From: Neoechinorhynchus agilis
Lineage: Eukaryota; Animalia; Acanthocephala
Assembly: GCA_051530055.1 (NCBI GenBank)
Contig: CM121341.1
Coordinates: 8,100,784-8,164,783 of the forward strand
Length of the DNA: 64,000 bases
Reading direction: 5' to 3'
Shown here piece by piece: positions 3,209-56,720 of the stretch (within the stretch, counting starts at the first letter, position 1; every line of letters begins with the position of its first letter). The notes beneath the pieces are model-generated. The model did not search any database. It saw only the letters and a list, made by a program, of their open reading frames with translations, and was not told the origin of the DNA. The translations under genes were made by a program, and so were the position numbers.

Positions 3209-3666
3209 TGCGGGTGTTCGGGAATTGATTTAATGAAATAAAAGGACATTTTGTGACGGATTGTTGGTAGAGATTAAAATTGGCACAGCTAAGATATTTT
3301 TAAAGAAAGGTTTCCGGTTGTGTATTGGATAGCGATATTTTGCTGAACGAATAATGTAGTAGATTCGTCCAAAGCGTTCATGAGAACACTATTTTGGATC
3401 CCAAGTCGACCGTAGTTTGTTCAATCCGTATTTGCGATTGGATTAATTTTTAAGACCACATTTTGCAGACTCAGCTATCTTGAATGGAATCACCATGTCC
3501 AAAAAGGCCAGCGTAATATTGAGCTGTGAATTCGCTGTTAAAATAGCAATCGACTGGAATCATCTTAAACTGCTTTCTTTGTGTGCCATTCGCCGTCCTC
3601 GTTTGGGCCAGAAAACATTAGGTCAGTACGACCTCAACTCGAAAACGGGCAAATAAAGATGAAGTA

Positions 3667-5229
3667 ATGGCGAAAAAGGAGATGACAGATTCAAGCGATA
3701 AAGGACGAATCCATTATGAAATGGCAACGTCCAAATCATTAAATATGCTAGTTAAAAAAGTTAAAATTGGATTGGACTCACAGTTTAAGGTTACAAACAA
3801 GATCTTAGTAACCAGTGTCTTTTCTGAGATTCTCAAACAAGAAATGGCCATCTCTCAGATTGGTAAGTCCGGCCTGATAAAGATTCTCCACCAAATGATT
3901 CAAAACAAAGAAAACGGAGAACTTGATTATTTGATTAAAGAAGTAGCAGCAAAAATTAAAGTAGTGCTCGGCATGGAGAAAGGTAAAAAATCCGATGATA
4001 AATCTCATACGATGTCCGGTATCCACTCAAAGTTTGATGTTGAGATTGAAGAGCAGTGTCCGATAGAAACGAAATCTAAATCCAGTTTTGAAGACGAAAT
4101 TTCAAGGAAGAGGCTGTCATCAACCATTCAAGGTGAAGAGAAAACAAAAATTCAGCGGACAGATTCAACACATCTCCGTCAAAGAATCTTGATGACTATG
4201 AACTCTGAGCACAAAATTGTGAATTTTGATTTATTAAGGAGCATCGTTGATGAAATTCTGAAGGGCGAAGTTAGCCTGAGTGAAATTCGTCAATCCGGAT
4301 TGATAGATGTCCTTGGAGAGATGCTCGACAACAAGGATAATGCTCCACTCAAGAAACTCTTAATCCAAGTTGCTATGAAGGTCAAGGAGGCTTTCAATCA
4401 AAAGCGATCTAAAGAAAGACCAGCGACCAAACCCAAATTGAATAAACCAAAAGAAGTAGAACACGAAATATCAAATACTGATTCTAGTGATCGGGGTTCT
4501 AACGCAATTTCGGAAAAGAGAACAGAATCGCCGAAGAGAATCAATAGCGATGAAGAAATAGAAACGGGACTTCACAATGTCGAAAACGTTCACAGTCAAC
4601 AGATTTCAGAATCCAAACAATTGATGCCGCCTTCTCGTTTAACCAAGAAGATTAAATTACTAAAGTTTTTATTGGATTCGCAATACGCAACCAAAAGCCT
4701 AGAACTGGTGGACGATGTCCTTTGCGAGATTTCAGAATTAGAGATGACTGTGGATGAAATCAAAGATTCCGATCTTATAAATATTCTCCATAAGATGGCC
4801 AGCAACGGGGAAAACGAACCGTTAATCGACATAATCGATAAAATCGGAAAAAAGATGGTGGGAATCTATAATCGGCAACCTACGGAAATGTCCAATATTT
4901 CGATCGAAAATAAATCAGGGTCACAATTGAAGGACAAACCACTCAATGAATCGATTTCAAAAAGAAAATCAAAGCCTTCAATTGAAATGAACTTGAGCAT
5001 CAAGGAACTCTGCGATCGTTTAAAAAGCATCTTGGACGAGAAGTTCACAGTTCGGAACCACGCGATGCTAAAGCGGATACTCAGCGCGATGATTGAACGT
5101 GAAATAGCGCTGAGTGAAATTCGGAATAACAATTTGGTCAACATCCTAAGTCAAGTTCGTTCGAATCATTTAAATATTCGGCACAAGGGACTGCTTGAAA
5201 AATTGCTGAAGAAAATAAATGGCGGCTGA
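3667..5229 (+). CDS. 5'-truncated copy of the TFIIS-N-like multi-module protein (4 modules, 520 aa)
   Basis: Open 520-aa ORF nearly identical to the C-terminal part of 21218-23149; lacks module 1 and a 12-nt segment (ARCK). Confidence 0.65.
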   Translation: MAKKEMTDSSDKGRIHYEMATSKSLNMLVKKVKIGLDSQFKVTNKILVTSVFSEILKQEMAISQIGKSGLIKILHQMIQNKENGELDYLIKEVAAKIKVVLGMEKGKKSDDKSHTMSGIHSKFDVEIEEQCPIETKSKSSFEDEISRKRLSSTIQGEEKTKIQRTDSTHLRQRILMTMNSEHKIVNFDLLRSIVDEILKGEVSLSEIRQSGLIDVLGEMLDNKDNAPLKKLLIQVAMKVKEAFNQKRSKERPATKPKLNKPKEVEHEISNTDSSDRGSNAISEKRTESPKRINSDEEIETGLHNVENVHSQQISESKQLMPPSRLTKKIKLLKFLLDSQYATKSLELVDDVLCEISELEMTVDEIKDSDLINILHKMASNGENEPLIDIIDKIGKKMVGIYNRQPTEMSNISIENKSGSQLKDKPLNESISKRKSKPSIEMNLSIKELCDRLKSILDEKFTVRNHAMLKRILSAMIEREIALSEIRNNNLVNILSQVRSNHLNIRHKGLLEKLLKKINGG

Positions 5230-5890
5230 TATTATCAATCATCGCTGATTTTACCCATGTTTAAGAGACGATTGACCAAGGATAAAATATTGTTCATGAT
5301 ATTCAAGGAGCTTTTAGTCGTTCCCATGATGAATAAGAATAAATCATTATCATAGTTCAGAGAATGAATAAATTTGTGTTTCGGAAAGCCTTTCATTTCG
5401 AAAATTCTTGATGAATTCTATACGATAAATATAATTTAAAAATATAATTTTTCACATCCATGATGTATATTTTTTCGACGCTGCTTATCAGTTATTTGTT
5501 TGCAAATATCATTGGGGAATGTGATTTGGAGTTTGACAATATCGCATGGAAATAAAAGCTATCAAAACTCACAGGATTCATAGTTATCATCGGCAAGTTT
5601 TAATGAGTCTGAAATCAAATTGTAAAGAAAAAATCACTCTATGACCAAAAATGTTTTTAAGATATTCTAAATGAAAAAATGCCTGAGTGAATTTCTATAA
5701 GCCGAATTTATTAACGCCTTGGCCAATAGCACTTAAACAAATAAGTTTGAAATGTCAAAGGAGAATGAATGTTCAAAAGAAATTTCCAAGAAAAAAAGAT
5801 TTTTTCAAACTTAAAAGGCAAAGAACACGTCATTTGCAAAATGTTGATAATTGAGGTACCGGGGACAATGATTGGAATTATTGTTTAATT

Positions 5891-5980
5891 CTTTATCCGG
5901 TAAATGATTTTTTTATTATAGATGTTTCGAACCTCGTCAAGTTCATCTTCTTTAATAAAAAATCATTCACCGGATGAAGA
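5891..5980 (-). mobile_element. Hairpin remnant of a hammerhead-bearing (Penelope pLTR-like) repeat lacking the CUG core
   Basis: Minus strand reads gaagatgaacttgacgaggttcgaaacatctataataaaaaa inside an inverted repeat; homologous to 57729-57855. Confidence 0.55.
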
Positions 5981-6731
5981 CCTTAATAATAACACGTATT
6001 TTGCGATTTAAGTTCAACATTTATAAAATTTCACAGATTGTATTTGATATCAATACGATAGATTTGTGTAATTTCGTTCAAATAACAAAAATAATTTGAA
6101 GGAAAATGACAGAAAATAATGAAAGTGCGAATTTTGATATTACAAGAAAGTACTGAATATTTTTGCGGAAATAAAAAGGATTTCTTGGAAACATTTTTAT
6201 AAGCATCACTGATTTTGAAAATAGAAATAAAGTCTTATTATTAAGTTCAGTAAACGCATCGACAGCCGTAAGGATGAAATACTCCCGCTTTAGAATTTTA
6301 AGTGAAGAAATTAATCGACTGATTGAATCTGCTTAAAAGAATATTGACAAAAAATAAATCACTGTTACAACAATAAGTTGATAGACGAGATTGAAATTTG
6401 GGAACTTTAAAAAGCTTAGATAATTTCTTTCAAATTAAAAAAGATTAGAGAAAAAGCTTTTTCCTTGATGCATTGTTGTTAAAATTCTTTGAGTGATTGC
6501 TAAATGGCAAAGTGCACTTCGTCCCTTAGAACTCTCGAAATCGCTAGAGGCTAAAATAATTCGATATTTGAGAAATGCTCTTCGTTTTGATCGATTTGTT
6601 TTTGAATTATTGTTTTGCTCGATTGGGTTGCAATGATGAACGAAATATTTATTGTATGCTTAATAGCCGAGTTTCGGTTTGTTGGAATGCGCTCTTTTCG
6701 GTTAAGCATAACGATTGCCGTCCGATAACCT

Positions 6732-8527
6732 TTATCCAATTGGATTGAATTGATTGTTATTTTGTTGGTTAATGTTGTAGTTTTGGAGAGCGACCATCGC
6801 TTGCTCCTGCGAGATTAGAACTCCTGAGTTTAAGGCTTTTATTTCGCCGCATCTTTGACAAAGCGGCACAAGGAGAAACTGTGACATTTCGTGGGAGTGA
6901 TTCGGATCAACGCAAATATTGACGTGACAAACCATTTGACTAGCCTGATTGCTATTGTTGACTCGTTGATTGGTTTGAATACTTAATCCGTTTTGGAGAA
7001 TCGCTGTATTGCCATATCTGAAATTTCCATCATTTCCTCCAATGTTAATGTTTTCGACGGGTGCGCTATTCTGCTGTGTTCCGAAATCAATATTCCCAAA
7101 ACCCAACTGTTCATTTCGATTTCCAATATTGGTACTGTTATTGTAGATTCCTTGGACTAAAGCAGCTGCGTTCGTGTTTTCTACTCGGTGGTTGTTCGCC
7201 AAGTTCAAATTTTGATTTGGAAAATATCCATTGGGTGCCATATTCCCAAAACCCAACTGTTCATTTCGATTTCCAATATTGGTACTGTTATTACAGATTC
7301 CTTGGACAAAATAGGCTGCGTTCGTATTTTCTACTCGGTGATTGTTCGCGAATTTCAAATTTTGATTTGGAAAATATCCATTGGGTGCCATATTCCCAAA
7401 ACCCAACTGTTCGTTTCGGTTTCCAATATTGGTACTGTTATTGTAGATTCCTTGGACTAAATAAGTTGCATTCGTATTTCCTACTCGGTGGTTGTTCGCG
7501 AATTTCAAATTTTGATTCGGTAAATATCCATTGGGTGCAATATTCCCAAAATCCAACTGTTCGTTTCGATTTCCAATATTGGTACTGTTATTATAGATTC
7601 CTTGGACTAAATTAGCTGCGTTCGAATTTTCTACTCGGGGGTTGTTCGCCAAGTTCAAATTTTGATTTGGAAAATATCCATTGGGTGCCATATTCCCAAA
7701 ACCCAACTGTTCATTTCGATTTCCAATATTGGTACTGTTATTATAGATTCCTTGGACTAAATCAGTTGCGTTCGTATTTGCCACTCGGTGGTTGTTCGCC
7801 AAGTTCAAATTTTGATTTGGAAAATATCCATTGGGTGCCACATTCCCAAAACCCAACTGTTCATTTCGATTTCCAATATTGGTACTGTTATTACAGATTC
7901 CTTGGACAAAATAGGCTGCGTTCGTATTTTCCACCGTCCTGTTCATTTCATGGGGTGCTGCATGAACGAAATCTCTCGGTTCAAATGAGGACCGGGCCCG
8001 TTTGTTCCGATCATCGTTCATTGATCCAATATTTGTACGTTTTCGGCCCGGTCTTTTGGGTTCTGGCTCCCTGTAATTCGGGTCAATGGTCCACCAAGAT
8101 CTTCTCGGATTATCGTCGTCCTCGATTTTAACGAATTTTTTGTTTATCGTAAGGCAATGTCGAATTGCGTTCTAAATACAATATCGGCGGCCATAAAAAT
8201 TTTAAGTTATGGGAAACTTACCTTCCAAGGCCTACTTTCGACGGGGCCCATTCGATAATTAAAATATAAATTGTTGTCCTCCAGCCATGAATAAATTTCA
8301 CGTAGTTTCAGCCTCTTTTCGGGGCTGCTATAGATTGCTTTTGCGATCAAATCCGCGTAGGTGTACGGCCCCCACGCATTTATTCGTCGACCCTTTGCAC
8401 CAATAAGAATAATCGATTCTTCACTGGTTTCTGATGAATTTCCTTCGATCCGTTGATTTCTATTTCCTTGATACGATTCATCACCATCATCATGAGAATG
8501 AGTAGAGCTTTTCCTGGAATCAGACAT
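6732..8527 (-). CDS. F1: divergent FoxO-type forkhead transcription factor with 50-aa Asn-rich repeats; exons 8527-8222 and 8171-6732, 581 aa
   Basis: Exon 1 RRINAWGPYTYADLIAKAIYSSPEKRLKLREIYSW..WK; 50-nt GTAAGT..TTTAG intron (8221-8172); exon 2 NAIRHCLTINKKFVKIEDDDNPRRSWWTIDP runs in frame into the 429-aa ORF; matches FoxO RRNAWGN.SYADLITKAIESSPEKRLTL..WK|NSIRHNLS. Confidence 0.9.
7092..7934 (-). repeat. Coding VNTR of F1, 150-bp/50-aa unit, about 5.6 copies
   Basis: ttccaatattggtactg recurs every 150 bp; unit is ENTNAAYFVQGICNNSTNIGNRNEQLGFGNMAPNGYFPNQNLNLANNHRV. Confidence 0.95.
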
Positions 8528-9327
8528 CTAAATTGGAAAAGTCAGATTAAAAATGAATTTAATTCATATTAATAAAGAAGGAATTCGACTTAAATGTCCA
8601 TCGAATTGATCGCTATATTCGACCGAAATCTTGGAGACGATTGAAAGATTCTATGTTCGAACTTTCTTGATTGAATGAGTGAATCGTATTTATACTCCCC
8701 AATTCGAAAACATCAACTTTGTTTTTTTGATTGAACTTTGTACCTAAGCGAATTTGTTTTGGATGTCATCTCGTTTTGCTTTTCTATGATTTGTTGTTAA
8801 GAGCTTCGATTTTTAAAAATTTGATCACTGATATTCTTTATTGTATCTTATTTTTGGCATTTGGAGAGCATTGATATCTTCTTTGCGGTATAATTCTAAT
8901 TTTATCATCTCTCCAATTAGTATTTTCCTAAACGGTCGACTTTGCTAAATTGAATGATCAATAAGTTATCATTAATTTTTTAGCCAGTTCTCATCAACCT
9001 TTTGAGCACTTTTTTTATTGGTTTACCAATCGCGGCAATACCGGACTCTTTGGTACATGATGAACAAGTGAATTAGCTTAGCCAGTTGCCCACTCGAATC
9101 ACTAACGGCTCGGTCAATCCGCACATCAGAATTCTTGAACTGTTGCTCAACAAAATTTCTGTGGTTCTCGCGAGTTCGGCTACCGTCCGGGCTCTACGGG
9201 CACCTGATGAGGATCAGCTGTATTTACGTGTTCTTCAAAAACTCTTGGTTATTCGTTGCGTCTTGCGAAACTTCTTGCAGTTCGACTTTTTTTAGTCCGG
9301 TTTGAAATTTTAGAATTTTTCTACTTT

Positions 9328-9811
9328 GCGTTCAACCTAAAAAATCGGATTTATTGATGTTTAAGATTTATAAATGTTGCAATCTCTTCGATGTTTTATT
9401 AAAAAATTTCTATAAAAGAAGATAAACCCCTTTTTCAATGAGATATTAGAAAAGATTTCAGTTACTTAGACATTATTTTTTAATTTAAAGAATTTAAAGT
9501 ATGCTGATGTGAATGTGCAACGAGTTTTTTATTTCTAAAGTTCGTATCGAAATTATAAAGATTAATTTTGTAATCAATTCGATTTACCGGCAGATTTTTC
9601 GGGTGCTTTTTTATTTGTAAAAATTAATTATTGGAATTTAAGAATTTTGCAGCTTTGCGTTCAACCGAAAAAAATCGGATTTATCAATATTTAAGATTTA
9701 TAAATGTTGCAATCTCTTCGATGTTTTATTAAAAAATATCTATAGGAGAAGATAAAACCTTTTTTCAATGAGATAATAGAAAAAATTTCTGCTACATAGA
9801 CATTATTTTTT
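9328..9811. repeat. About 155-bp direct repeat pair (9328-9482 and 9657-9811)
   Basis: tgcgttcaacc..atcggattt..gttgcaatctcttcgatgttttattaaaaaat..gacattattttt occurs twice. Confidence 0.8.
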
Positions 9812-11016
9812 ACCCTTCTCTAAATCGCCTTAATCTTTACTTTGTTTCAAGATTGAATTATTCATGTTTTTATATTGGCATAAAATTGAAGTAATTTTAT
9901 TAGGCCCGATAAAGATATAAAAACCAGTTTAAGAAACGTGGGAAAATTTCATTGTTTAGGGGGATTGATTCTTTTTTTTCTCGCGAATGCCATTTGAAAT
10001 TGCTCGTTTTTTTAAGACATTTCTGGTTATCATCGGCATATTTCCGAAGCGATGATTAAATCCAGCTTCAATGTTGGACACCTAAACCATTGATAATATT
10101 TTTTTGAATTTTGATTTTTTTATGAAACTATAATTTGAAAAGATTAATTGGATTTAATACAGAATTAAATTGTTTTTGCCATTTAAGATTTTTGTGAATA
10201 AGTCTTGGTAGGGAATTATTTGCCGCATTTCCCAGAAGCTCCCGACTGATTGAAATTATTGGCGAATTTCATTTTTCAACCATTTTTAAAAGCAGATAAA
10301 CTTATTCGGAGACTTCTAAGGTGGATCGCTATATTCCTAGTGAAATAAAATGAGAGCGTTTTTAATCTAAAGAATTGATTTCTACGTTTTTCTATTGACA
10401 ATAAAGTTCAGACTTAAATTCACGATACTTTCAAAGACCATTTGAATGAGACCAAAAGTAAAAAATTAGTTGTGGCAACAAAGGAAAATACTTCGTTGGT
10501 TGACTATTTGTGGCAGCATTCGCTTCCTTTTTACTTTCCTTTAACTTTCTTGACCTAAGTAAATAAGAGAAATTCATCTGAAATTCCTCAACTCAACTGT
10601 CACGAAATTGTTTTTGCTCCAAGAACTCATTTTCAATGCATCTAAAATCCTAGTCGATTCGCACTTCATCAGTGATATTGCAACATAAAATCCATAAACG
10701 TTATCTTGATTCATTTGATAAAAAAATCAAGCTCAGTATTTGGAGCAGTACATCCAAAAAATATAGCGTTTGTTTGTGCAAGAATGTTTAAAGCATTGAT
10801 CTCCAAATGTTTCAATGAGTAAATAAAGGAATTTATGCACAAATAAAAATACGCAAATATAAAGACTTGCTTCCTTGTTATTTGTTTTAAATTTAAACAA
10901 AGATGGCAACAATAATTATGTAATTGCCAATATTTGTGGTTCTATCGGAATGGTAAGAATAGGAAATATTCAATGTTTTTACAAAAATCATCGCTTACAA
11001 CTCAACGATCTACAAA

Positions 11017-12639
11017 GTGAATTCAAATGGAAATTGCTTACGAGAATCGTCTTTATGTTACCAAAACGATGTAAGTAGTCTTTTATCGCGATATCTTCAC
11101 AATGCCGATCGGTTTTATTATAGCCAAAACATTATGGAGCTGTGTAAAAGTCCACACGGCGAATCCCCGAAGTGTACCGAAGAGGATTTATATACCCAAT
11201 CTCGCAATCTCTCTCAGTACTATAAATCAGTGTTGGATTTATTAAATGAAATGGTAAATCAGTCGAGGTATTTATGGGCGAATCGAAGAGCAACTGGACC
11301 AGAAATGAGACATACAACGACCGACTACTATGAACCACACCAACAATTAAGTAACCAAATGCAGCCGAACGCTACACAATCAGACCAATCAATTGGTCAA
11401 TTTAATCAATTTGAACAGCAAGGCCCAATGTTCGAATGCCAACGAAACGAACATGGCATGCAAAACTATCACACAACGAATCAACAGCATTCGATCGACC
11501 AATCAAATCAATATGAAAGTTCGTTCTTTTACAATCAAACCCAACAGATCGGCCAATCCACTCAATTTGAGCCGACATTTCCGCCAAATCAACCTCAAAG
11601 ATCGGACCAAGTCTGGCAATCACCGAGAATACTAAATCCAACGCTCCAAAGTCAGCGATTATATCAAGCAAGACAGCCGAATCGCTATAACCCAATTAGT
11701 CAACAGCATCCGATCCATCAATTGAATCAATATGAAGTGGATTACGCACCTAATCAGTCTCTACCACTCAATCAATCAAATATGTCGATGTACAGTGATC
11801 AGCCGATTGATTTCACCGGTCAACGGCAACAACTCCATCCTGTGGGTGTATTTGACACTCAAAGAAATGTCGAGCAACAAACACAGTTTTTTAATCCCGA
11901 AATTTCCCAACCGCTAAAAGTTGAATCAAACTTTTCCGAATATGGCCGTAATCATCTCCAAGAATCGGCGATAAGATTTACAAATTCAAACGCTGCATTT
12001 AATCAATCTCAAGATCCGGTCTACATGGAACCAACTCTTCAACCAAATAATATTTTGAATGAAGAAGGTAAGATTTTAGGACAAAAAATCCGGTTTAACG
12101 CTCTTATAGAAATTCTGGGAATGAGCAGAGCACAGGCTGAGCAGGAATTGGGTTCTATGATTCCAACGATAAAGATTTTCTTAAGAGAAGTTCGGAAGCA
12201 ACATGCTCATTGTAAGTTTTTATCCGTCGTAAAATATCTTCTCAAGATATTTTTATCAGGTAAAGACCGAAGAATGTTTTACAAATCGATTGTTATCGTA
12301 AAAGAATTTCAACGTGGACGACCGCTGAGAGCCATTACGCTTAAAAAAGCTATTGATTTTGTCGAAAAAACATTGATGCCCATCATGGCATCGGAGTGGA
12401 TTCCATTGCAGTCAACGAGAACGAATCCAACTCAGTTGCAATCGGCATATTCGTCTCTTTTCGGGAATGTGGAGCGCGGAGAAACTGTCGTCGAAATCCT
12501 TAACGGCAATGAAGAAGGAGCAGAGCAGCGGATTGCTGAGAATCCTGAACGTACAAATGAATTGAACGCGACCAATAGAAAGCGTCATCGTGAAGCTTTG
12601 GAGAATGATAAAGAGAAAAACAAAAAGATTAGATTGTAA
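11017..12639 (+). CDS. G1: orphan Q/N/P-rich protein with C-terminal helical region and basic NLS-like tail (first ATG at 11134; the ORF-track start is GTG)
   Basis: 540-codon open frame conserved intact in a second copy (42686-44308 -); ends RKRHREALENDKEKNKKIRL. Confidence 0.7.
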   Translation: MNSNGNCLRESSLCYQNDVSSLLSRYLHNADRFYYSQNIMELCKSPHGESPKCTEEDLYTQSRNLSQYYKSVLDLLNEMVNQSRYLWANRRATGPEMRHTTTDYYEPHQQLSNQMQPNATQSDQSIGQFNQFEQQGPMFECQRNEHGMQNYHTTNQQHSIDQSNQYESSFFYNQTQQIGQSTQFEPTFPPNQPQRSDQVWQSPRILNPTLQSQRLYQARQPNRYNPISQQHPIHQLNQYEVDYAPNQSLPLNQSNMSMYSDQPIDFTGQRQQLHPVGVFDTQRNVEQQTQFFNPEISQPLKVESNFSEYGRNHLQESAIRFTNSNAAFNQSQDPVYMEPTLQPNNILNEEGKILGQKIRFNALIEILGMSRAQAEQELGSMIPTIKIFLREVRKQHAHCKFLSVVKYLLKIFLSGKDRRMFYKSIVIVKEFQRGRPLRAITLKKAIDFVEKTLMPIMASEWIPLQSTRTNPTQLQSAYSSLFGNVERGETVVEILNGNEEGAEQRIAENPERTNELNATNRKRHREALENDKEKNKKIRL

Positions 12640-12872
12640 TTTGAGAAATAATCTTATGAGAATGATTTCTAAAGAGATTTGTAAGTAAACGGTTGCTCTA
12701 ATCCCAATTATTCTCGAAAGTGAACTTATTCCTGTTTTGGTGCATTTTCTGCGAAAATTATTTGCTGCCGGTAGTGTTGAGCGATTAAAGAAAACGAATT
12801 TAGTCCCCTACAAAATATTAGCGCAGCACAAAAACGTAAAAGTAGATTTTTCACGGAGATGAGAGTTCAAGA

Positions 12873-19566: not shown

Positions 19567-20466
19567 ATCTTTCAGGTTCTCTTTTTTTAGAAATTATAAA
19601 TTGTTTAACGTTTCATGGTTACCCAACTACACTTCGCAAATCAGTTAGAAAATTATGAGCTATGCTTGGCTTATTTTGCTGGACAACAATAATACTAGGA
19701 ATTGACCGAAATCATAAGACGAATGTCCATCGAATGTTCTAAGGGACGAAGTGAACTTCGCCATTTAGCAATCACTCAAAGAATTTGAACAATAATCCCG
19801 TTCAATGTCTTATTTGTTGTATCAAATAAAAAGGTTTTTGTCTCTACTCTTTTTTAATTTGAAAGAAATTATCTAAGCTTTTTAAAGTTCCCAAATTTCA
19901 ATCTCGTCTATCAACTTATTGATGTAACAGTGATTTATTTTTCGTCAATATTCTTTTAAGCAGATTCAATTAGTCGATTAATTTCTTTACTTAAAAATCT
20001 AAAGCGGGAGTATTTTATCCTTACGGCTGTCGATGCGTTTACTGAACTTAATAATAAGACTTCATTTCGATTTTCAAAATCAGTGATGCTTATAAAAGTG
20101 TTTCCAAGAAATCCTTTTTATTTCCGCAAAAATATTCAGTACTTTCTAGTAATATCAAAATTCGTACTTTCATTATTTTCTGTCATTTTCCCTCAAATTA
20201 TTTTTGTTATTTGAACGAAATTACAAGCTTTTTAAAGTTCACAAATTTCAATCTCATCTATCAACTTATTGATGTAACAGTGATTTATTTTTCGTCAATA
20301 TTCTTTTAAGCAGATTAAATCAGTCGATTAATTTCTTTACTTAAAAGTCTAAAGCGGGATTATTTTATCTTTACGGCTAACAAATCTATCGTATTGATAT
20401 CAAATACAATCTGTGAAATTTTATAAATGTTGAACTTAAATCGCAAAATACGTGTTATTGTTAAGC

Positions 20467-20556
20467 TCTTCATCCGGTGAATGATTTTTTATTAAAGAAG
20501 ATGAACCTGACGAGGTTCGAAACATCTATAATAAAAAAATCATTTACCGGATAAAG
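20467..20556 (+). mobile_element. Hairpin remnant of the hammerhead-bearing repeat lacking CUG
   Basis: gatGAACCtgacgaGGTTCgaaacatctataataaaa inside an inverted repeat; partner of 5891-5980. Confidence 0.55.
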
Positions 20557-21217
20557 AATTAAACAATAATTCCAATCATTGTCCCCGGTACCTCAATTAT
20601 CAACATTTTGCAAATGACGTGTTCTTTGCCTTTTAAGTTTTAATAAATCTTTTTTTCTTAGAAATTTATTTTGAACATTCATTGAACTTTGACATTTCAA
20701 ACTTATTTGTTTAAGTGCTATCAGCCAAGGCGTTAATAAATTCGGCTTATAGAAATTCACTCAGGCATTTTTTCATTTAGAATATCTTAAAAACATTTTT
20801 GGTCATAGAGTGATTTTTTCTTTGCAATTTGATTTCAGACTCATTAAAAGTTGCCGATGATAACTATGAATCCTGTGAGTTTTGATAGCTTTTATTTTCA
20901 TGCGATATTGTCAAACTCCAAATCACATTCCCCAATGATATTTGCAAACAAATAACTGACAAGCAGCGTCGAAAAAATATACATCATGGATGTGAAAAAT
21001 TATATTTTTAAATTATATTTATCGTGTAGAATTCATCAAGAATTTTCGAAATGAAAGGCTTTCCGAAACACAAATTTATTCATTCTCTGAACTATGATAA
21101 TGATTTATTCTTATTCATCATGGGAACGACTAAAAGCTCCTTGAATATCATGAACAATATTTTATCCTTGGTCAATCGTCTCTTAAACATGGGTAAAATC
21201 AGCGATGATTGATAATA

Positions 21218-23149
21218 TCAGCCGCCATTTATTTTCTTCAGCAATTTTTCAAGCAGTCCCTTGTGCCGAATATTTAAATGATTCGAACGAACTTGACTTA
21301 GGATGTTGACCAAATTGTTATTCCGAATTTCACTCAGCGCTATTTCACGTTCAATCATCGCGCTGAGTATCCGCTTTAGCATCGCGTGGTTCCGAACTGT
21401 GAACTTCTCGTCCAAGATGCTTTTTAAACGATCGCAGAGTTCCTTGATGCTCAAGTTCATTTCAATTGAAGGCTTTGATTTTCTTTTTGAAATCGATTCA
21501 TTGAGTGGTTTGTCCTTCAATTGTGACCCTGATTTATTTTCGATCGAAATATTGGACATTTCCGTAGGTTGCCGATTATAGATTCCCACCATCTTTTTTC
21601 CGATTTTATCGATAATGTCGATTAGCGGTTCGTTTTCCCCGTTGCTGGCCATCTTATGGAGAATATTTATAAGATCGGAATCTTTGATTTCATCCACAGT
21701 CATCTCTAATTCTGAAATCTCGCAAAGGACATCGTCCACCAGTTCTAGGCTTTTGGTTGCGTATTGCGAATCCAATAAAAACTTTAGGAATTTAATCTTC
21801 TTGGTTAAACAAGAAGGCGGCATCAATTGTTTGGATTCTGAAATCTGTTGACTGTGAACGTTTTCGACATTGTGAAGTCCCGTTTCTATTTCTTCATCGC
21901 TATTGATTCTCTTCGGCGATTCTGTTCTCTTTTCCGAAATTGCGTTAGAACCCCGATCACTAGAATCAGTATTTGATATTTCGGGTTCTACTTCTTTTGG
22001 TTTATTCAATTTGGGTTTGGTCGCTGGTCTTTCTTTAGATCGCTTTTGATTGAAAGCCTCCTTGACCTTCATAGCAACTTGGATTAAGAGTTTCTTGAGT
22101 GGAGCATTATCCTTGTTGTCGAGCATCTCTCCAAGGACATCTATCAATCCGGATTGACGAATTTCACTCAGGCTAACTTCGCCTTTCAGAATTTCATCAA
22201 CGATGCTCCTTAATAAATCAGAATTCACAATTTTGTGTTCAAAGTTTATAGTCATCAAGATTCTTTGACGGAGATGTGTTGAATCTGTCCGCTGAATTTT
22301 TGTTTTCTCTTCACCTTGAATGGTTGATGACAGCCTCTTCCTTGAAATTTCTTTACATCTCGCGTCTTCAAAACTGGATTTAGATTTCGTTTCTATCGGA
22401 CACTGCTCTTCAATCTCAACATCAAACTTTGAGTGGATACCGGACATCGTATGAGATTTATCATCGGATTTTTTACCTTTCTCCATGCCGAGCACTACTT
22501 TAATTTTTGCTGCTACTTCTTTAATCAAATAATCAAGTTCTCCGTTTTCTTTGTTTTGAATCATTTGGTGGAGAATCTTTATCAGGCCGGATTTACCAAT
22601 CTGAGAGATGGCCATTTCTTGTTTGAGAATCTCAGAAAAGACACTGGTTACTAAGCTCTTGTTTGTAACCTTAAACTGTGGGTCCAATCCAATTTTAACT
22701 TTTTCAACTAGCATATTTAATGATTTGGACGTTGCCATTTCATAACGGGTTCGTCCTTTATCGCTTGAATCTGTCATCTCCTTTTTCGCCATTACTTCAT
22801 CTTTATTTGCCCGTTTTCGAGTTGAGGTCGTACTGACCAATGTATTCGTCGTTTTCATCCTTGGACAATATTTTTCGCCGACAATCTTTTTGAATTTGCT
22901 CTTTAATTTACTTAGGAACCAACTTGTACTTTTGCAATCTTTGTCTACGGCCATTTCGTCTACCATCTCAAGCATCCCAAAGTTTAAGATTTCTTCGGCT
23001 GTAATCGATCGCGTTAACAATTCTCGCAGGTTTCGTTTGGCCAAAGATTGGTTGATTGTACAAGAATCACCGTCGAGATTATCTCTCAATTCATCACATA
23101 TTTGAGCGAGTGATTTATCCTTAGCATTTGATGTTCGCTTGATCGCCAT
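21218..23149 (-). CDS. 643-aa protein with five ~78-aa helical modules resembling the TFIIS N-terminal (TND/LW) domain
   Basis: Intact intronless ORF from ATG 23149 (MAIKRTS); five repeats of L..IL.EIL..EI.LSEI..SGLI.IL.EM..N..N..L..L...I..K separated by charged linkers. Confidence 0.75.
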   Translation of the reverse strand: MAIKRTSNAKDKSLAQICDELRDNLDGDSCTINQSLAKRNLRELLTRSITAEEILNFGMLEMVDEMAVDKDCKSTSWFLSKLKSKFKKIVGEKYCPRMKTTNTLVSTTSTRKRANKDEVMAKKEMTDSSDKGRTRYEMATSKSLNMLVEKVKIGLDPQFKVTNKSLVTSVFSEILKQEMAISQIGKSGLIKILHQMIQNKENGELDYLIKEVAAKIKVVLGMEKGKKSDDKSHTMSGIHSKFDVEIEEQCPIETKSKSSFEDARCKEISRKRLSSTIQGEEKTKIQRTDSTHLRQRILMTINFEHKIVNSDLLRSIVDEILKGEVSLSEIRQSGLIDVLGEMLDNKDNAPLKKLLIQVAMKVKEAFNQKRSKERPATKPKLNKPKEVEPEISNTDSSDRGSNAISEKRTESPKRINSDEEIETGLHNVENVHSQQISESKQLMPPSCLTKKIKFLKFLLDSQYATKSLELVDDVLCEISELEMTVDEIKDSDLINILHKMASNGENEPLIDIIDKIGKKMVGIYNRQPTEMSNISIENKSGSQLKDKPLNESISKRKSKPSIEMNLSIKELCDRLKSILDEKFTVRNHAMLKRILSAMIEREIALSEIRNNNLVNILSQVRSNHLNIRHKGLLEKLLKKINGG

Positions 23150-23529
23150 TTTTGATTCGTTCTCTTGCACTTTAAAGACAATACTAAAGTATGGTTTTAG
23201 TTTTACTGCACCGAAATTGAACGACGTCAATTCGACCTCAATTGGCGTCTTTCAAATGTACAAACATCTGAGATATTGTCAAACGTGAAATGGAAGCTTT
23301 ATTTTCATTGTTTTGATGAATTAGTAATCAAAATTAGTACTGAAGAAGAGCTGACAAAAATAATAGCAGCCCAGTAAAATGATTTATTGTTCGTAGTAAG
23401 AATCTTCATTTGTATGGTAGTTATTTGTCTATATCTTGAGTCTGATTATCATTTTACTTCCTTCTTGACGTCCATAAGGCTGATATCCGAACCGAGAGAT
23501 CAGGAAAGATTAGGGAGAATGCGAGATTA

Positions 23530-25429: not shown

Positions 25430-25758
25430 GTACCATTCGCCGTGCTCGTTTGGCCCAGGAACGATGGGTACAAGGTCGAGTACTTCAAACCGATTTTTTG
25501 CTTAGAGGATGAATTCGGCAGATAATACCAGTTCGAAATTTGATTAAGTCGAAGGATATCAATAAGAAACCAACAGACTTTACAAAGGATTGTTAAAGCT
25601 ACGATTTTATATCATTGAAGTTAGGGTTGTAAGCCAAAGACAAAGAACGACTATTAGCGATGTTGAAGAAACCGCTAGGAACTCACGACCTCGACAGGCG
25701 GCGAGCTGTAATGTTGAGCTTTGCAATAAAAAACTTGATGAAGTCAGAAAATCCCGCA

Positions 25759-29424: not shown

Positions 29425-29495
29425 GCATTGGTGGTTGAATGGTAGAATTCGTGATTGCTACGCTAAAGACCCGGGTTCGGTATCCGTCCAATGCA
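29425..29495 (+). tRNA. tRNA-Gly-derived pseudogene (copy 2)
   Basis: Identical to 12873-12943. Confidence 0.75.
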
Positions 29496-29992: not shown

Positions 29993-31542
29993 TTATCCAA
30001 TTGGATTGAATTGATTGTTATTTTGTTGGTTAATGTTGTAGTTTTGGAGAGCGATCATCGCTTGCTCCTGCGAGATTAGAACTCCTGAGTTTAAGGCTTT
30101 TATTTCGCCGCATCTTTGACAAAACGGCACAAGGAAAAACTGTGACATTTCGTGGGAGTGATTCGGATCAACGCAAATATTGACGTGACAAACCATTTGA
30201 CTAGCCTGATTGCTATTGTTGACTCGTTGATTGGTTTGAATACTTAATCCGTTTTGGAGAATCGCTGTATTGCCATATCTGAAATTTCCATCATTTCCTC
30301 CAATGTTAATGTTTTCGACGGGTGCGCTATTCTGCTGTGTTCCGAAATCAATGATCCGGTGATTGTTCGCCAAGTCCAAATTTTGATTTGGAAAATATCC
30401 ATTGGGTGCCATATTCCCAAAACCCAACTGTTCATTTCGATTTCCAATATTGGTACTGTTATTGTGGATTCCTTGGACTAAATTAGTTGCATTCGTATTT
30501 TCCACTCGGTGGTTGTTCGCCAAGTTCAAAGTTTGATTTGGAAAATATCCATTGGGTGCCATATTCCCAAAACCCAACTGTTCGTTTCGATTTCCAATAT
30601 TGGTGCTGTTATTGTGGATTCCTTGGACTAAATTAGTTGCATTCGTATTTTCCACTCGGTGGTTGTTCGCCAAGTTCAAATTTTGATTTGGTAGATATCC
30701 AATGGGTGCCATATTCCCAAAACCCAACTGTTCGTTTCCAATATTGGTACTGTTATTATAGATTCCTTGGACTAAATCAGTTGCGTTCGTATTTGCCACT
30801 CGGTGGTTGTTCGCCAAGTTCAAATTTTGATTTGGAAAATATCCATTGGGTGCCACATTCCCAAAACCCAACTGTTCATTTCGATTTCCAATATTGGTAC
30901 TGTTATTACAGATTCCTTGGACAAAATAGGCTGCGTTCGTATTTTCCACCGTCCTGTTCATTTCATGGGGTGCTGCATGAACGAAATCTCTCGGTTCAAA
31001 TGAGGACCGGGCCCGTTTGTTCCGATCATCGTTCATTGATCCAATATTTGTACGTTTTCGGCCCGGTCTTTTGGGTTCTGGCTCCCTGTAATTCGGGTCA
31101 ATGGTCCACCAAGATCTTCTCGGATTATCGTCGTCCTCGATTTTAACGAATTTTTTGTTTATCGTAAGGCAATGTCGAATTGCGTTCTAAATACAATATC
31201 GGCGGCCATAAAAATTTTAAGTTATGGGAAACTTACCTTCCAAGGCCTACTTTCGACGGGGCCCATTCGATAATTAAAATATAAATTGTTGTCCTCCAGC
31301 CATGAATAAATTTCACGTAGTTTCAGCCTCTTTTCGGGGCTGCTATAGATTGCTTTTGCGATCAAATCCGCGTAGGTGTACGGCCCCCACGCATTTATTC
31401 GTCGATCCTTCGCACTAATAAGAATAATCGATTCTTCACTGGTTTCTGATGAATTTCCTTCGATCCGTTGATTTCTATTTCCTTGATACGATTCATCACC
31501 ATCATCATGAGAATGAGTAGAGCTTTTCCTGGAATCAGACAT
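29993..31542 (-). CDS. F2: FoxO-type forkhead factor with 4 Asn-rich repeats; exons 31542-31237 and 31186-29993, 499 aa
   Basis: Same 50-nt intron (31236-31187); uninterrupted frame; one repeat is the 48-aa variant lacking RN. Confidence 0.9.
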
Positions 31543-40152: not shown

Positions 40153-41856
40153 ATGTCTCATTCCAGGAAAAGCTCTACTCATTCTCATGATGATGGTGAT
40201 GAATCGTATCAAGGAAATAGAAATCAACGGATCGAAGGAAATTCATCAGAAACCAGTGAAGAATCGATTATTCTTATTGGTGCAAAGGGTCGACGAATAA
40301 ATGCGTGGGGCCGTACACCTACGCGGATTTGATCGCAAAAGCAATCTATAGCAGCCCCGAAAAGAGGCTGAAACTACGTGAAATTTATTCATGGCTGGAG
40401 GACAACAATTTATATTTTAATTATCGAATGGGCCCCGTCGAAAGTAGGCCTTGGAAGGTAAGTTTCCCATAACTTAAAATTTTTACGGCCGCCGATATTG
40501 TATTTAGAACGCAATTCGACATTGCCTTACGATAAACAAAAAATTCGTTAAAATCGAGGACGACGATAATCCGAGAAGATCTTGGTGGACCATTGACCCG
40601 AATTACAGGGAGCCAGAACCCAAAAGACCGGGCCGAAAACGTACAAATCCTGGATCAATGAACGATGATCGGAACAAACGGGCCCGGTCCTCATTTGAAC
40701 CGAGAGATTTCGTTCATGCAGCACCCCATGAAATGAACAGGACGGTGGAAAATTCGAACGCAGCCTATTTTGTCCAAGGAATCTGTAATAACAGTACTAA
40801 TATTGGAAATCGAAATGAACAGTTGGGTTTTGGGAATATGGCACCCAATGGATATCTACCAAATCATTTGGTGAACTTGCGAACAACCACCGAGTGGAAA
40901 ATACGAATGCAACTAATTTTGTCCAAGGAATCTGTAATAACAGTACCAATATTGGAAATCGAAACGAACAGTTGGGTTTTGGGAATATGGCACCCAATGG
41001 ATATTTTCCAAATCAAAATTTGAACTTGGCGAACAACCACCGAGTAGAAAACACGAACGCAGCCTATTTAGTCCAAGGAATCTGTAATAACAGTACCAAT
41101 ATTGGAAATCGAAATGAACAGTTGGGTTTTGGGAATATGGCACCCAATGGATATTTTCCAAATCAAAATTTGAACTTGGCGAACAACCACCGAGTAGAAA
41201 ACACGAACGCAGCCTATTTTGTCCAAGGAATCTGTAATAACAGTACCAATGTTGGAAATCGAAACGAACAGTTGGGTTTTGGGAATATTGCGCCCAATGG
41301 ATATTTTCCAAATCAAAATTTGAACTTGGCGAACAACCCCCGAGTGGCAAATACGAACGCAGCTAATTTAGTCCAAGGAATCCACAATAACAGTACCAAT
41401 ATTGGAAATCGAAATGAACAGTTGGGTTTTGGGAATATGGCACCCAATGGATATTTTCCAAATCAAAATTTGGACTTGGCGAACAATCACCGGATCATTG
41501 ATTTCGGAACACAGCAGAATAGCGCACCCGTCGAAAACATTAACATTGGAGGAAATGATGGAAATTTCAGATATGGCAATACAGCGATTCTCCAAAACGG
41601 ATTAAGTATTCAAACCAATCAACGAGTCAACAATAGCAATCAGGCTAGTCAAATGGTTTGTCACGTCAATATTTGCGTTGATCCGAATCACTCCCACGAA
41701 ATGTCACAGTTTCTCCTTGTGCCGCTTTGTCAAAGATGCGGCGAAATAAAAGCCTTAAACTCAGGAGTTCTAATCTCGCAGGAGCAAGCGATGATCGCTC
41801 TCCAAAACTACAACATTAACCAACAAAATAACAATCAATTCAATCCAATTGGATAA
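40153..41856 (+). pseudogene. F3: FoxO-type gene with 5 repeats and two apparent -1 frameshifts (pseudogene or sequencing error)
   Basis: ATG 40153; GGGG instead of GGGGG at 40307-40310; intron 40458-40507; second frameshift at about 40866-40880; C-terminus intact. Confidence 0.75.
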
Positions 41857-51732: not shown

Positions 51733-54700
51733 ATGTCTGATTCCAGGAAAAGCTCTACTCATTCTCATGATGATGGTGATGAATCATATCAAGGAAATAG
51801 AAATCAACGGATCGAAGGAAATTCATCAGAAACCAGTGAAGAATCGGTTATTCTTATTAGTGCGAAGGATCGACGAATAAATGCGTGGGGGCCGTACACC
51901 TACGCGGATTTGATCGCAAAAGCAATCCAAAGCAGCCCCGAAAAGAGGCTGAAACTACGTGAAATTTATTCATGGCTGGAGGACAACAATTTATATTTTA
52001 ATTATCGAATGGGCCCCGTCGAAAGTAGGCCTTGGAAGGTAAGTTTCCCATAACTTAAAATTTTAATGGCCGCCGATATTGTATTTAGAACGCAATTCGA
52101 CATTGCCTTACGATAAACAAAAAATTCGTTAAAATCGAGGACGACGATAATCCGAGAAGATCTTGGTGGACCATTGACCCGAATTACAGGGAGCCAGAAC
52201 CCAAAAGACCGGGCCGAAAACGTACAAATCCTGGATCAATGAACGATGATCGGAACAAACGGGCCCGGTCCTCATTTGAACCGAGAGATTTCGTTCATGC
52301 AGCACCCCATGAAATGAACAGGACGGTGGAAAATTCGAACGCAGCTAATTTAGTCCAAGGAATCTGTAATAACAGTACCAATATTGGAAATCGAAATGAA
52401 CAGTTGGGTTTTGGGAATATGGCACCCAATGGATATTTTCCAAATCAAAATTTGAACTTGGCGAACAACCACCGAGTAGAAAATACGAACGCAGCTAATT
52501 TAGTCCAAGGAATCCACAATAACAGTACCAATATTGGAAACGAACAGTTGGGTTTTGGGAATATGGCACCCAATGGATATTTTCCAAATCAAAATTTGAA
52601 CTTGGCGAACAACCACCGAGTAGAAAATACGAACGCAACTAATTTAGTCCAAGGAATCTATAATAACAGTACCAATATTGGAAATCGAAATGAACAGTTG
52701 GGTTTTGGGAATATGGCACCCAATGGATATTTTCCAAATCAAAATTTGAACTTGGCGAACAACCCCCGAGTAGAAAATTCGAACGCAGCTAATTTAGTCC
52801 AAGGAATCTATAATAACAGTACCAATATTGGAAACGAAATGAACAGTTGGGTTTTGGGAATATGGCACCCAATGGATATTTTCCAAATCAAAATTTGAAC
52901 TTGGCGAACAACCCCGAGTAGAAAATTCGAACGCAGCTAATTAGTCGGAATCTATAATAACATTATTGGGAAATGAACAGTTGGGTTTTGGGAATATGGC
53001 ACCCAATGGATATTTTCCAAATCAAAATTTGAACTTGGCGAACAACCACCGAGTAGAAAATTCGAACGCAGCTAATTTAGTCCAAGGAATCTATAATAAC
53101 AGTACCAATATTGGAAACCGAAATGAACAGTTGGGTTTTGGGAATATGGCACCCAATGGATATTTTCCAAATCAAAATTTGAACTTGGCGAACAACCCCC
53201 GAGTAGAAAATTCGAACGCAGCTAATTTAGTCCAAGGAATCTATAATAACAGTACCAATATTGGAATCGAAATGAACAGTTGGGTTTTGGGAATATGGCA
53301 CCCAATGGATATTTTCCAAATCAAAATTTGAACTTGGCGAACAACCACCGAGTAGAAAATACGAACGCAACTAATTTAGTCCAAGGAATCTATAATAACA
53401 GTACCAATATTGGAAAAACGGTTTTGGGAATATGGCACCCAATGGATATTTTCCAAATCAAAATTTGAACTTGGCGAACAACCCCCGAGTAGAAAATTCG
53501 AACGCAGCTAATTTAGTCCAAGGAATCTATAATAACAGTACCAATATTGGAAATGAACAGTTGGGTTTTGGGAATATGGCACCCAATGGATATTTTCCAA
53601 ATCAAAATTTGAACTTGGCGAACAACCCCCGAGTAGAAAATTCGAACGCAGCTAATTTAGTCCAAGGAATCTATAATAACAGTACCAATATTGGAAATGA
53701 ACAGTTGGGTTTTGGGAATATGGCACCCAATGGATATTTTCCAAATCAAAATTTGAACTTGGCGAACAACCCCCGAGTAGAAAATTCGAACGCAACTTAT
53801 TTAGTCCAAGGAATCTATAATAACAGTACCAATATTGGAAATGAACAGTTGGGTTTTGGGAATATGGCACCCAATGGATATTTTCCAAATCAAAATTTGA
53901 ACTTGGCGAACAACCCCCGAGTAGAAAATTCGAACGCAGCTAATTTAGTCCAAGGAATCTATAATAACAGTACCAATATTGGAAAGAAATGAACAGTTGG
54001 GTTTTGGGAATATGGCACCCAATGGATATTTTCCAAATCAAAATTTGAACTTGGCGAACAACCCCCGAGTAGAAAATTCGAACGCAGCTAATTTAGTCCA
54101 AGGAATCTATAATAACAGTACCAATATTGGAAATCGAAATGAACAGTTGGGTTTTGGGAATATGGCACCCAATGGATATTTTCCAAATCAAAATTTGAAC
54201 TTGGCGAACAACCCCCGAGTAGAAAATTCGAACGCAACTAATTTAGTCCAAGGAATCTATAATAACAGTACCAATATTGGAAACGAAATGAACAGTTGGG
54301 TTTTGGGAATATGGCACCCAATGGATATTTTCCAAATCAAAATTTGAACTTGGCGAACAACCCCCGAGTAGAAAATTCGAACGCAACTTATTTAGTCCAA
54401 GGAATCTATAATAACAGTACCAATATTGGAAATGAACAGTTGGTTTTGGGAATATGGCACCCAATGGATATTTTCCAAATCAAAATTTGAATTGCGAACA
54501 ACCCCGAGTAGAAATCGAAGCACTATTTAGTCCAAGGAATCTAAATAACAGTACCAATATTGGAAATGAACAGTTGGGTTTTGGGAATATGGCACCCAAT
54601 GGATATTTTCCAAATCAAAATTTGAACTTGGCGAACAACCCCCGAGTAGAAAATTCGAACGCAACTTATTTAGTCCAAGGAATCTATAATAACAGTACCA

Positions 54701-56720
54701 ATATTGGAAATCGAAATGAACAGTTGGGTTTTGGGAATATGGCACCCAATGGATATTTTCCAAATCAAAATTTGAACTTGGCGAACAACCCCCGAGTAGA
54801 AAATTCGAACGCAGCTAATTTAGTCCAAGGAATCTATAATAACAGTACCAATATTGAAACGAAATGAACAGTTGGGTTTTGGGAATATGGCACCCAATGG
54901 ATATTTTCCAAATCAAAATTTGAACTTGGCGAACAACCCCCGAGTAGAAAATTCGAACGCAACTAATTTAGTCCAAGGAATCTATAATAACAGTACCAAT
55001 ATTGGAAATCGAAATGAACAGTTGGGTTTTGGGAATATGGCACCCAATGGATATTTTCCAAATCAAAATTTGAACTTGGCGAACACCCCCGAGTAGAAAA
55101 TTCGAACGCAGCTAATTTAGTCAAGGAATCTATAATAACAGTACCAATATTGGAAATGAACAGTTGGGTTTTGGGAATATGGCACCTAATGGATATTTTC
55201 CAAATCAAAATTTGAACTTGGCGAACAACCCCCGAGTAGAAAATTCGAACGCAACTTTTAGTCCAAGGAATCTATAATAACAGTACCAATATTCGAAATG
55301 AACAGTTGGGTTTTGGGAATATGGCACCCAATGGATATTTTCCAAATCAAAATTTGAACTTGGCGAACAACCCCCGAGTAGAAAATTCGAACGCAGCTAA
55401 TTTAGTCCAAGGAATCTATAATAACAGTACCAATATTGGAAATCGAAATGAACAGTTGGGTTTTGGGAATATGGCACCTAATGGATATTTTCCAAATCAA
55501 AATTTGAACTTGGCGAACAACCCCCGAGTAGAAAATTCGAACGCAGCTAATTTAGTCCAAGGAATCTATAATAACAGTACCAATATTGGAAACGAAATGA
55601 ACAGTTGGGTTTTGGGAATATGGCACCCAATGGATATTTTCCAAATCAAAATTTGAACTTGGCGAACAACCCCCGAGTAGAAAATTCGAACGCAACTTAT
55701 TTAGTCCAAGGAATCTATAATAACAGTACCAATATTGGAAATCGAAAGAACAGTTGGGTTTTGGGAATATGGCACCCAATGGATATTTTCCAAATCAAAA
55801 TTTGAACTTGGCGAACAACCACCGAGTAGAAAATTCGAACGCAACTTATTTAGTCCAAGGAATCTATAATAACAGTACCAATATTGGAAACCGAAATGAA
55901 CAGTTGGGTTTTGGGAATATGGCACCTAATGGATATTTTCCAAATCAAAATTTGAACTTGGCGAACAACCCCCGAGTAGAAAATTCGAACGCAGCTAATT
56001 TAGTCCAAGGAATCTATAATAACAGTACCAATATTGGAAATCGAAATGAACAGTTGGGTTTTGGGAATATGGCACCTAATGGATATTTTCCAAATCAAAA
56101 TTTGAACTTGGCGAACAACCCCCGAGTAGAAAATTCGAACGCAACTTATTTAGTCCAAGGAATCTATAATAACAGTACCAATATTGGAAATGAACAGTTG
56201 GGTTTTGGGAATATGGCACCCAATGGATATTTTCCAAATCAAAATTTGAACTTGGCGAACAACCCCCGAGTAGAAAATTCGAACGCAACTTATTTAGTCC
56301 AAGGAATCTATAATAACAGTACCAATATTGGAAATGAACAGTTGGGTTTTGGGAATATGGCACCCAATGGATATTTTCCAAATCAAAATTTGAACTTGGC
56401 GAACAACCCCCGAGTAGAAAATTCGAACGCAGCTAATTTAGTCCAAGGAATCTATAATAACAGTACCAATATTGGAAATGAACAGTTGGGTTTTGGGAAT
56501 ATGGCACCCAATGGATATTTTCCAAATCAAAATTTGAACTTGGCGAACAACCCCCGAGTAGAAAATTCGAACGCAGCTAATTTAGTCCAAGGAATCTATA
56601 ATAACAGTACCAATATTGAAACGAAATGAACAGTTGGGTTTTGGGAATATGGCACCCAATGGATATTTTCCAAATCAAAATTTGAACTTGGCGGACAACC
56701 ACCGAGTAGAAAATACGAAT
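51733..56720 (+). pseudogene. F4: FoxO-type gene with about 30 Asn-rich repeats, frameshifted array, C-terminal domain absent
   Basis: Intact exon 1 (51733-52038), intron 52039-52088, exon 2 open to about 52835; array ends abruptly near 56720. Confidence 0.8.
52329..56720 (+). repeat. About 30 tandem copies of the 150/144-bp F unit
   Basis: 30 occurrences of ggatattttccaaatc counted between 52431 and 56661. Confidence 0.95.

Follow-up and report, generated by a model that had tools for sequence, protein, structure and literature searches.

The FoxO/DAF-16 class of forkhead transcription factors is normally represented by a single, tightly regulated regulator of stress responses and longevity. 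A 64,000-nucleotide (nt) stretch of the genome of the acanthocephalan parasite Neoechinorhynchus agilis (assembly GCA_051530055.1, contig CM121341.1, positions 8,100,784 to 8,164,783 of the forward strand; hereafter the window) departs from this pattern, as it holds four copies, F1 to F4, of a FoxO-like gene in which the forkhead domain is followed by asparagine (Asn)-rich units of 50 amino acids (aa). Besides FoxO itself, the closest described counterparts are glutamine/asparagine (Q/N)-rich prion-like domains and coding minisatellites. The evidence presented below makes it probable that these copies belong to a FoxO-descended family specific to N. agilis (or to acanthocephalans), in which an older Asn-rich segment was multiplied by instability at the DNA level, with the intact copies staying under constraint and one copy decaying into a satellite.

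Literature searches for FoxO proteins that carry asparagine-rich or prion-like domains, and for forkhead proteins in Acanthocephala, returned nothing relevant, in agreement with an original prediction by a model, which knew of no FoxO of this architecture. The N. agilis genome and transcriptome paper and one of its supplements contain no mention of forkhead or FoxO (PMC12690905). The family is, in the literature searched, undescribed; it is lineage-specific, and its members in the GenBank entries of the assembly are annotated only as "hypothetical protein".

FoxO-class identity of the family

Two minus-strand open reading frames (ORFs) that had been called separately, 8207-8527 and 6732-8021, are pieces of the same gene, F1. 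Removal of a 50-nt GT-AG intron in phase 0 joins 8527-8222 to 8171-6732, giving one frame of 581 codons and a protein of 581 aa. The two exons contribute complementary halves of the forkhead domain, with positions 4-42 of the Pfam Forkhead profile in exon 1 and positions 49-85 in exon 2. In the spliced protein of F2, which is near-identical to F1, the profile (PF00250) is complete, scoring 77.7 bits over positions 4-85 of 88. Sequence, Pfam and Tandem Repeats Finder also confirmed the proposed order of parts in F1, namely the forkhead domain, a basic linker, the Asn-rich units and a tail containing cysteine (Cys) and histidine (His). Four arrays of period 150 were found in the window by Tandem Repeats Finder, with the copy numbers originally given (5.6, 4.0, 5.0 and 30.1), and the 50-aa unit indeed contains 14 Asn and an LGFGN motif. 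The tail has no Pfam match; its four conserved Cys may bind zinc.

In a sequence search of the PDB, 10 of the 11 best matches are chains of human FOXO1, FOXO3 and FOXO4 (71-85 bits), while the eleventh, 2mbf_A, is named just "Fork head domain containing protein". The next class, FOXP1, follows at 58 bits. The FOXO1/3/4 alignments that were inspected score 80-85 bits and run without gaps through the insertion specific to the class, between helices 2 and 3 (...GDSNSSAGWKNSIRH...). A search of 1.8 billion representatives returned other N. agilis proteins as the nearest relatives (50-66% identity). Among the relatives from other organisms that were looked up, those with names are FoxO proteins (from a nematode, a thrips and a snail), accompanied by an unnamed copepod transcript, all at 43-47% identity. 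In a tree of forkhead domains, the N. agilis paralogs cluster together, with a Shimodaira–Hasegawa-like approximate likelihood ratio test (SH-aLRT) value of 98 for P0001, P0007 and P0011. Additionally, the top forkhead matches include four predicted proteins with 4-8 forkhead domains each (P0005, P0006, P0008 and P0009), of which P0006, P0008 and P0009 come from Schistocerca locusts. Such multi-forkhead predictions may be tandem Fox arrays fused by gene prediction, or may reflect a separate expansion.

The position of the intron points in the same direction. A phase-0 intron at WK/N is present in F1, F2, F3 and F4, as well as in two diverged paralogs, P0007 and P0014. The FoxO genes of the snail Babylonia areolata and the nematode Bursaphelenchus okinawaensis read ...TGGAAG/GT...AG/AAC..., with the same split between K and N of GWK/NSIRH, which bears out the earlier statement that this site is the one known from FoxO genes.

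The regulatory hallmarks of the class are missing. The Akt motif RxRxxS/T is absent from F1 and from P0014, and P0007 keeps a perfect Akt-type motif, RKRENS (residue 143, L001/L002), directly after the forkhead domain, where FOXO1 has its second Akt site. The same site reads RKRTNI in F1 and F2 and RKRTNP in F3 and F4. The FOXO-TAD and KIX-binding regions (PF16676 and PF16675) gave no Pfam match at E values up to 1, and an Atlas feature search with the C-terminal part returned FOXO clusters at 0.67 only, below the level that is meaningful for this tool. With FOXO1/3/4 as the best solved matches and with the FoxO intron site, the F1 family is assigned to the FoxO class as a multi-copy, FoxO-descended group, as originally proposed.

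Origin, constraint and decay of the Asn-rich repeat

The diverged paralogs P0007 (ACOME3_005217, 349 aa, two genomic copies) and P0014 (339 aa), whose forkhead domains are 65% and 50% identical, show what the repeat is derived from. In both, an MS.S N-terminus and a forkhead domain are followed by a basic RKR stretch, a single Asn-rich segment of 50 aa and a C-x4-C-x17-C-x2-C tail. The N-terminal MS.S..SS of F1 is conserved in both, and their introns lie at the same site, being 50 and 48 nt long, bounded by GT...AG, and identical to the F1 intron at 36/50 and 25/50 positions. A search with the C-terminal part of F1 found matches in N. agilis proteins only. The older paralogs already combine a single unit with this tail and this intron site, so the repeat arose when a constrained segment of older date was amplified within the gene. 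Therefore, the view of the repeat as a newly fused domain does not hold, and a foreign domain fused to FoxO is ruled out.

Two further ideas on the repeat were considered. The unit and the proximal part of the tail have no significant similarity (E=0.28), which leaves an older internal duplication without support. The proposal that the repeats carry the binding site of the factor itself was rejected for this family, as the window contains 4 copies of TTGTTTAC (3.4 expected), all of them outside the arrays.

Selection was estimated from the ratio of nonsynonymous to synonymous substitution rates (dN/dS) between F1 and P0007. The values were 0.06 for the exon-1 half of the forkhead domain, 0.22 for the exon-2 half (Fisher p=0.001), 0.36 for the unit (p=0.04), 0.22 for the tail (p=1.5e-7) and 0.64 for the linker (not significant). 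The unit is 72% identical between the two proteins, with its Gly, Asn and aromatic positions fixed. Purifying selection acts on the exon-2 forkhead half, the unit and the tail. Since the exon-2 forkhead half has no upstream start codon of its own, its conservation is best explained by translation of a spliced message.

Within the window, the only intact copies are F1 and F2. The GenBank model ACOME3_001941 (499 aa) is exactly the F2 model obtained here, including the same WK/N splice, while ACOME3_001943 (518 aa) and ACOME3_001945 (371 aa) correspond to F3 and F4. A protein search among the GenBank entries of N. agilis found an additional family copy on a 21.7-kb contig. F3 is interrupted by two frameshifts, one a change from G5 to G4 in exon 1 (about 40307) and the other from GG to G in unit 1 (about 40879); model ACOME3_001943 bypasses them by extra introns and thereby loses part of the forkhead domain. 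These frameshifts may be assembly errors, because both sit in G runs and the assembly is Nanopore-based (PMC12690905).

F4 presents a different picture. Its reading frame stops at 52895, after about 3.8 units, and the tail is missing. The lengths of the array units are irregular (150, 144, 148, 135, 149, 137 nt and so on), 16 of the 30 not being multiples of 3, and identical losses of 1-2 nt recur in several of them. Variable columns of this array, sorted by ancestral codon position, are distributed flatly (11/13/11, p=0.89), whereas the in-frame units of F1, F2 and F3 show a third-position bias (7/5/17, p=0.014), and their ratio of nonsynonymous to synonymous differences (pN/pS) is 0.34. A search of the F4 array for recent higher-order repeats (identity of 97% or more across 250 nt or more) found none. 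The broken frames, the missing tail and the lack of codon-position bias therefore identify the array as a satellite derived from a coding repeat, amplified out of frame, with shared frameshifting deletions and without coding constraint; it encodes no 30-repeat protein in this assembly. Consequently, the original picture of four paralogs that differ mainly in repeat number, one of them with 30 repeats, has to be given up, given the two frameshifts of F3 and the truncated, tail-less state of F4.

The family copies in the window are more than 98% identical and mosaic. The head of F1 is nearest to F2 (3 differences, versus 7 to F3), and its tail is nearest to F3 (2 differences, versus 11 to F2), which indicates sequence exchange between paralogs. 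The intact pair behaves as a coding minisatellite, with 5.6 in-frame units in F1 versus 4 in F2, in a comparison among paralogs of one assembly.

The following course of events would account for these data. In the ancestor, a short N-terminus would have preceded a FoxO forkhead domain with its ancient intron, and a basic stretch for nuclear localisation, a single Asn-rich segment of 50 aa and a Cys/His tail would have followed it. The 150-nt piece coding for the segment would then have multiplied in tandem, most likely via unequal recombination or slippage, and the paralogs would afterwards have exchanged sequence. F1 (5.6 units) and F2 (4) would have remained in frame under purifying selection, and in F4, with constraint lost, the unit would have continued as a non-coding satellite of about nucleosome length. 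Differences in repeat number would thus be mainly a product of DNA instability rather than a value set for each gene. The spliced protein is expected to be a nuclear factor that binds forkhead sites without Akt control. Its Asn-rich region could serve as a low-complexity activation or self-association region, the valency of which would rise with repeat number, and its tail could form a small zinc-binding or partner-binding module. The features concerned are collected in Table 1.

Table 1. Members of the FoxO-class family in the window and their parts.
Feature	Position	Strand	Description
F1 exon 1	8222..8527	-	Start codon, 45-aa N-terminus, first forkhead half (helices 1-2, FoxO-type insertion); ends ...RPWK
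F1 intron	8172..8221	-	50 nt, GTAAGT...TTTAG, phase 0; splits K/N in WK/NAIRH (...RPWK / NAIRHC...)
F1 exon 2	6732..8171	-	Recognition helix and wings, basic linker, 5.6 units, Cys/His tail; stop 6732-6734
F1 forkhead domain, FoxO type	8067..8368	-	Intron-interrupted; base-contact N, R, H retained in NAIRH
F1 array	7092..7934	-	5 full 150-nt units and a 93-nt partial unit, every one in frame
F1 C-terminal tail	6735..7091	-	Conserved C-x4-C-x17-C-x2-C and DPNHSH motifs
Candidate TATA box TATAAATA	8687..8694	-	160 nt upstream of the F1 start codon; sequence basis only
F2, intact paralog	29993..31542	-	499 aa, 4 units (one of 48 aa); exon 1 31237-31542, intron 31187-31236, exon 2 29993-31186; GenBank ACOME3_001941
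F3, paralog	40153..41856	+	5 units; two 1-nt frameshifts, at about 40307 and about 40879; GenBank ACOME3_001943
F4, truncated gene	51733..52898	+	Exon 1, intron 52039-52088, exon 2 open for 269 codons only; GenBank ACOME3_001945, 371 aa
F4 array	52326..56719	+	30 units, frame-broken, no tail after it, without codon-position bias; satellite from coding repeat

A large inverted duplication (29258-42619) has F2 and F3 as its arms, and its spacer contains a 186-nt satellite (33979-35541) as well as a DnaJ gene that lacks introns (35801-36760; Pfam DnaJ and DnaJ_C). The homology of F4 to F1 ends 275 nt before the start codon, the corresponding distance for F2 and F3 being 474 nt. Directly upstream of F4 (48000-52000), the GC skew is strongly negative (-0.33 to -0.41), and a reverse-transcriptase domain is encoded by ORFs at 49696-50577.

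RNA evidence and rival explanations

Four sequencing runs marked "RNA?" (X1-X4) contain the F1 region, and family sequences are present in them. The study of the N. agilis genome and transcriptome used 74 directional poly-A mRNA-Seq libraries and BRAKER2 annotation with mRNA-Seq evidence (PMC12690905). Runs X1-X4 are probably poly-A RNA, as their size fits these 74 libraries (PMC12690905). In sister runs of the study to which X1-X4 belong, a single-copy DnaJ ORF is complete. The comparison covered positions 6300-9100 and used assembled contigs, in which minor variants are dropped.

The contigs span 6551-8740 at a depth of 16-55 outside the repeats, and the 3' flank proper to F1 (6300-6550) has zero depth. 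The contig that leaves the stretch at 6551 runs into the 3' flank common to F2 and F3, at a contig depth of 42, and its joint between array and tail is of the F2/F3 type. Several paralog forms were recovered: run X3 has an exon 1 identical to that of F1, another exon 1 differs at two sites, both changes being synonymous, and a TNPGS form characteristic of F3 and F4 is also present. Short N-terminal products (94-297 aa) had no match in the protein search, the collection of which apparently does not include ORFs of the RNA runs.

Several observations weigh against a constrained family that is expressed as a spliced factor. A contig at 7896-8246 crosses the intron unspliced in all four runs (4/4), at exon-level depth, and no spliced joint is listed. 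Moreover, contig ends extend beyond the candidate TATA box (X1) and beyond AATAAA (X3), which fits unprocessed RNA or some DNA carry-over. The dN/dS of the unit (0.36, p=0.04) is just moderately under 1, and selection on the present F1 copy is unmeasurable at more than 98% identity between copies, so that the signal comes from older divergences. Finally, no region beyond the forkhead domain is modelled confidently by AlphaFold2 (AF2). With a six-sequence family alignment, this domain alone is confident, while the predicted local distance difference test (pLDDT) score is 20-30 for the unit and 20-38 across unit and tail.

In these assemblies, any spliced form is at most as abundant as the unspliced one. 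Either splicing of this short intron is inefficient in the family, or the RNA has not been processed. DNA carry-over is the less likely source of the contigs, because the flanks are unequally represented, with zero depth for the F1 flank and a contig of depth 42 joined to that of F2/F3, and because the sister runs contain the DnaJ ORF in full. Of the original expectation of spliced RNA across 8221-8172, the presence of the family in RNA contigs stands, but only the unspliced form is seen across the intron, in contigs that can drop variants. An unusual possibility is that most poly-A RNA retains the ancient FoxO intron as a detained intron, so that splicing would gate production of the full factor.

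The unspliced contigs also speak for a rival account, improbable on the whole, in which the cluster in the window consists of decaying, non-functional copies, transcribed at most as unspliced RNA, and the working genes are the older single-unit paralogs such as P0007. Such decay would agree with the broken state of F3 and F4 in the assembly, with surroundings made of satellites, a reverse transcriptase of a long interspersed nuclear element (LINE) and a palindrome, and with the loss in F1 of the Akt-type site RKRENS of P0007. However, the reading frames of F1 (581 codons) and F2 (499 codons) stay open across a repeat which, as F4 demonstrates, quickly loses its frame when unconstrained. In-frame unit substitutions are biased to the third codon position, and both differences of the variant exon 1 in RNA contigs are synonymous. 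The frameshifts of F3 lie in G runs of a Nanopore-based assembly and are possibly errors (PMC12690905).

The composition of the repeat raises the question of its role. The repeat region of F1 contains 27.5% Asn, 10% Gly, 9% aromatic and 9% charged residues. Over a span of 80 residues, the Q+N count peaks at 30 in F1, in F2 and in P0007 with its single unit, whereas P0014 reaches 27; the criterion of Michelitsch and Weissman for Q/N-rich regions is reportedly at least 30 Q+N in 80 consecutive residues. FG dipeptides number 7 in the 581 residues of F1, about one per 50-aa unit, which is short of an FG-repeat domain. Of the composition originally claimed, the Q/N content just reaches this threshold, while the likeness to FG repeats is weak, and the label "prion-like" is borderline for F1.

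Repeat number might nevertheless act as a functional dial, in which proteins with 4, 5 and 6 or more units differ in condensation, prion-like aggregation or transactivation, and the multi-copy state is kept for that reason. An Asn-rich, aromatic-bearing region with few charges and a Q/N count at the threshold would suit such a dial, as would the conservation of units at the protein level and the difference in unit number between intact copies. Yet the single-unit P0007 has an equal Q/N score, so this property was not created by amplification, and the extreme 30-unit member is non-coding. The presence of a non-coding satellite made from the same unit points to amplification at the DNA level, the RNA is seen only unspliced across the intron, and the AF2 models are uninformative. 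The dial is thus an unlikely explanation, and DNA-level repeat instability fits the data at least as well as tuning by repeat number. No new mechanism is shown here, and a functional role of repeat number is no more than a possibility. A wider proposal, doubtful at present, is that in-frame Asn-rich amplification yields copies forming condensates or heritable aggregates of differing strength, while the same DNA unit seeds satellites; if true, it would connect repeat instability, gene regulation and satellite birth.

Lastly, it is very improbable that the 50-aa units fold as a regular repeat (for example, a beta-solenoid or a hairpin stack) that binds a partner, instead of forming a disordered prion-like region: the unit is well conserved between F1 and P0007 (72% identity, dN/dS 0.36, fixed Gly, Asn and aromatic positions) and single-sequence AF2 of F2 draws long strand pairs in each unit, but this model is unreliable (pLDDT just 45-60 in units and 39 overall), the family-alignment model scores only 20-30 for the unit, and there is no Pfam match.

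Wider surroundings and comparison with known systems

Outside the family, the window contains two duplicated blocks with 98-99% identity. The first (9718-12791 / 42534-45609) carries a 540-aa ORF without a Pfam match (11017-12639 and 42686-44308), and the second (3611-6067 / 20380-22847) is associated with ORFs of 520 and 670 aa (3667-5229 and 21218-23230). Further tandem arrays are found at 25747-26341 (170 nt), 59068-61117 (271 nt) and 61710-64000 (106 nt). The 106-nt array has 23% GC and extends past the end of the window, and a protein-kinase exon (58213-58815) adjoins the 271-nt array. No tRNA or Rfam families were found within the window.

The probable history of a FoxO-descended family with an unstable Asn-rich segment would mean that a parasite has many FoxO-derived genes in which the insulin/Akt sites were dropped, a private C-terminal region was gained and a core segment is multiplying in tandem. 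Three stages can be distinguished, namely the single-unit ancestor (elsewhere in the genome), the intact multi-unit genes and a runaway array turned satellite. The locus thus offers a clear natural example of the growth of a coding repeat and the birth of a satellite from an exon.

Compared with the FoxO/DAF-16 class, the family shares a forkhead domain nearest to FOXO1/3/4 with the class-specific residues before helix 3, the N, R and H base contacts, the basic stretch after the domain and the phase-0 WK/N(S/A)IRH intron. It differs in that F1 is without the RxRxxS/T motif, that no FOXO-TAD or KIX-binding domain was detected, and that the C-terminal part of F1 consists of Asn-rich unit(s) and a Cys/His tail found in N. 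agilis only. Many near-identical copies are present here, versus one gene in the class.

The Q/N-rich prion-like domains of yeast, those of Swi1, Cyc8 and Mot3 being the examples usually named, resemble F1 in belonging to DNA-binding or chromatin factors and in having an Asn-rich, low-charge, aromatic-bearing region, with Q/N at the threshold. Unlike in these, the region of F1 is built from near-perfect tandem repeats of 50 aa, about 22% of its residues are hydrophobic, and its score is borderline.

Coding minisatellites, reportedly exemplified by the FLO/ALS adhesins of yeast and the zinc-finger arrays of PRDM9, share with the family in-frame units of about 150 nt, a unit number that varies among near-identical copies, and signs of recombination. 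In contrast to these systems, the variation described here is between paralogs of one assembly and not between individuals, and the protein that hosts the repeat is a transcription factor.

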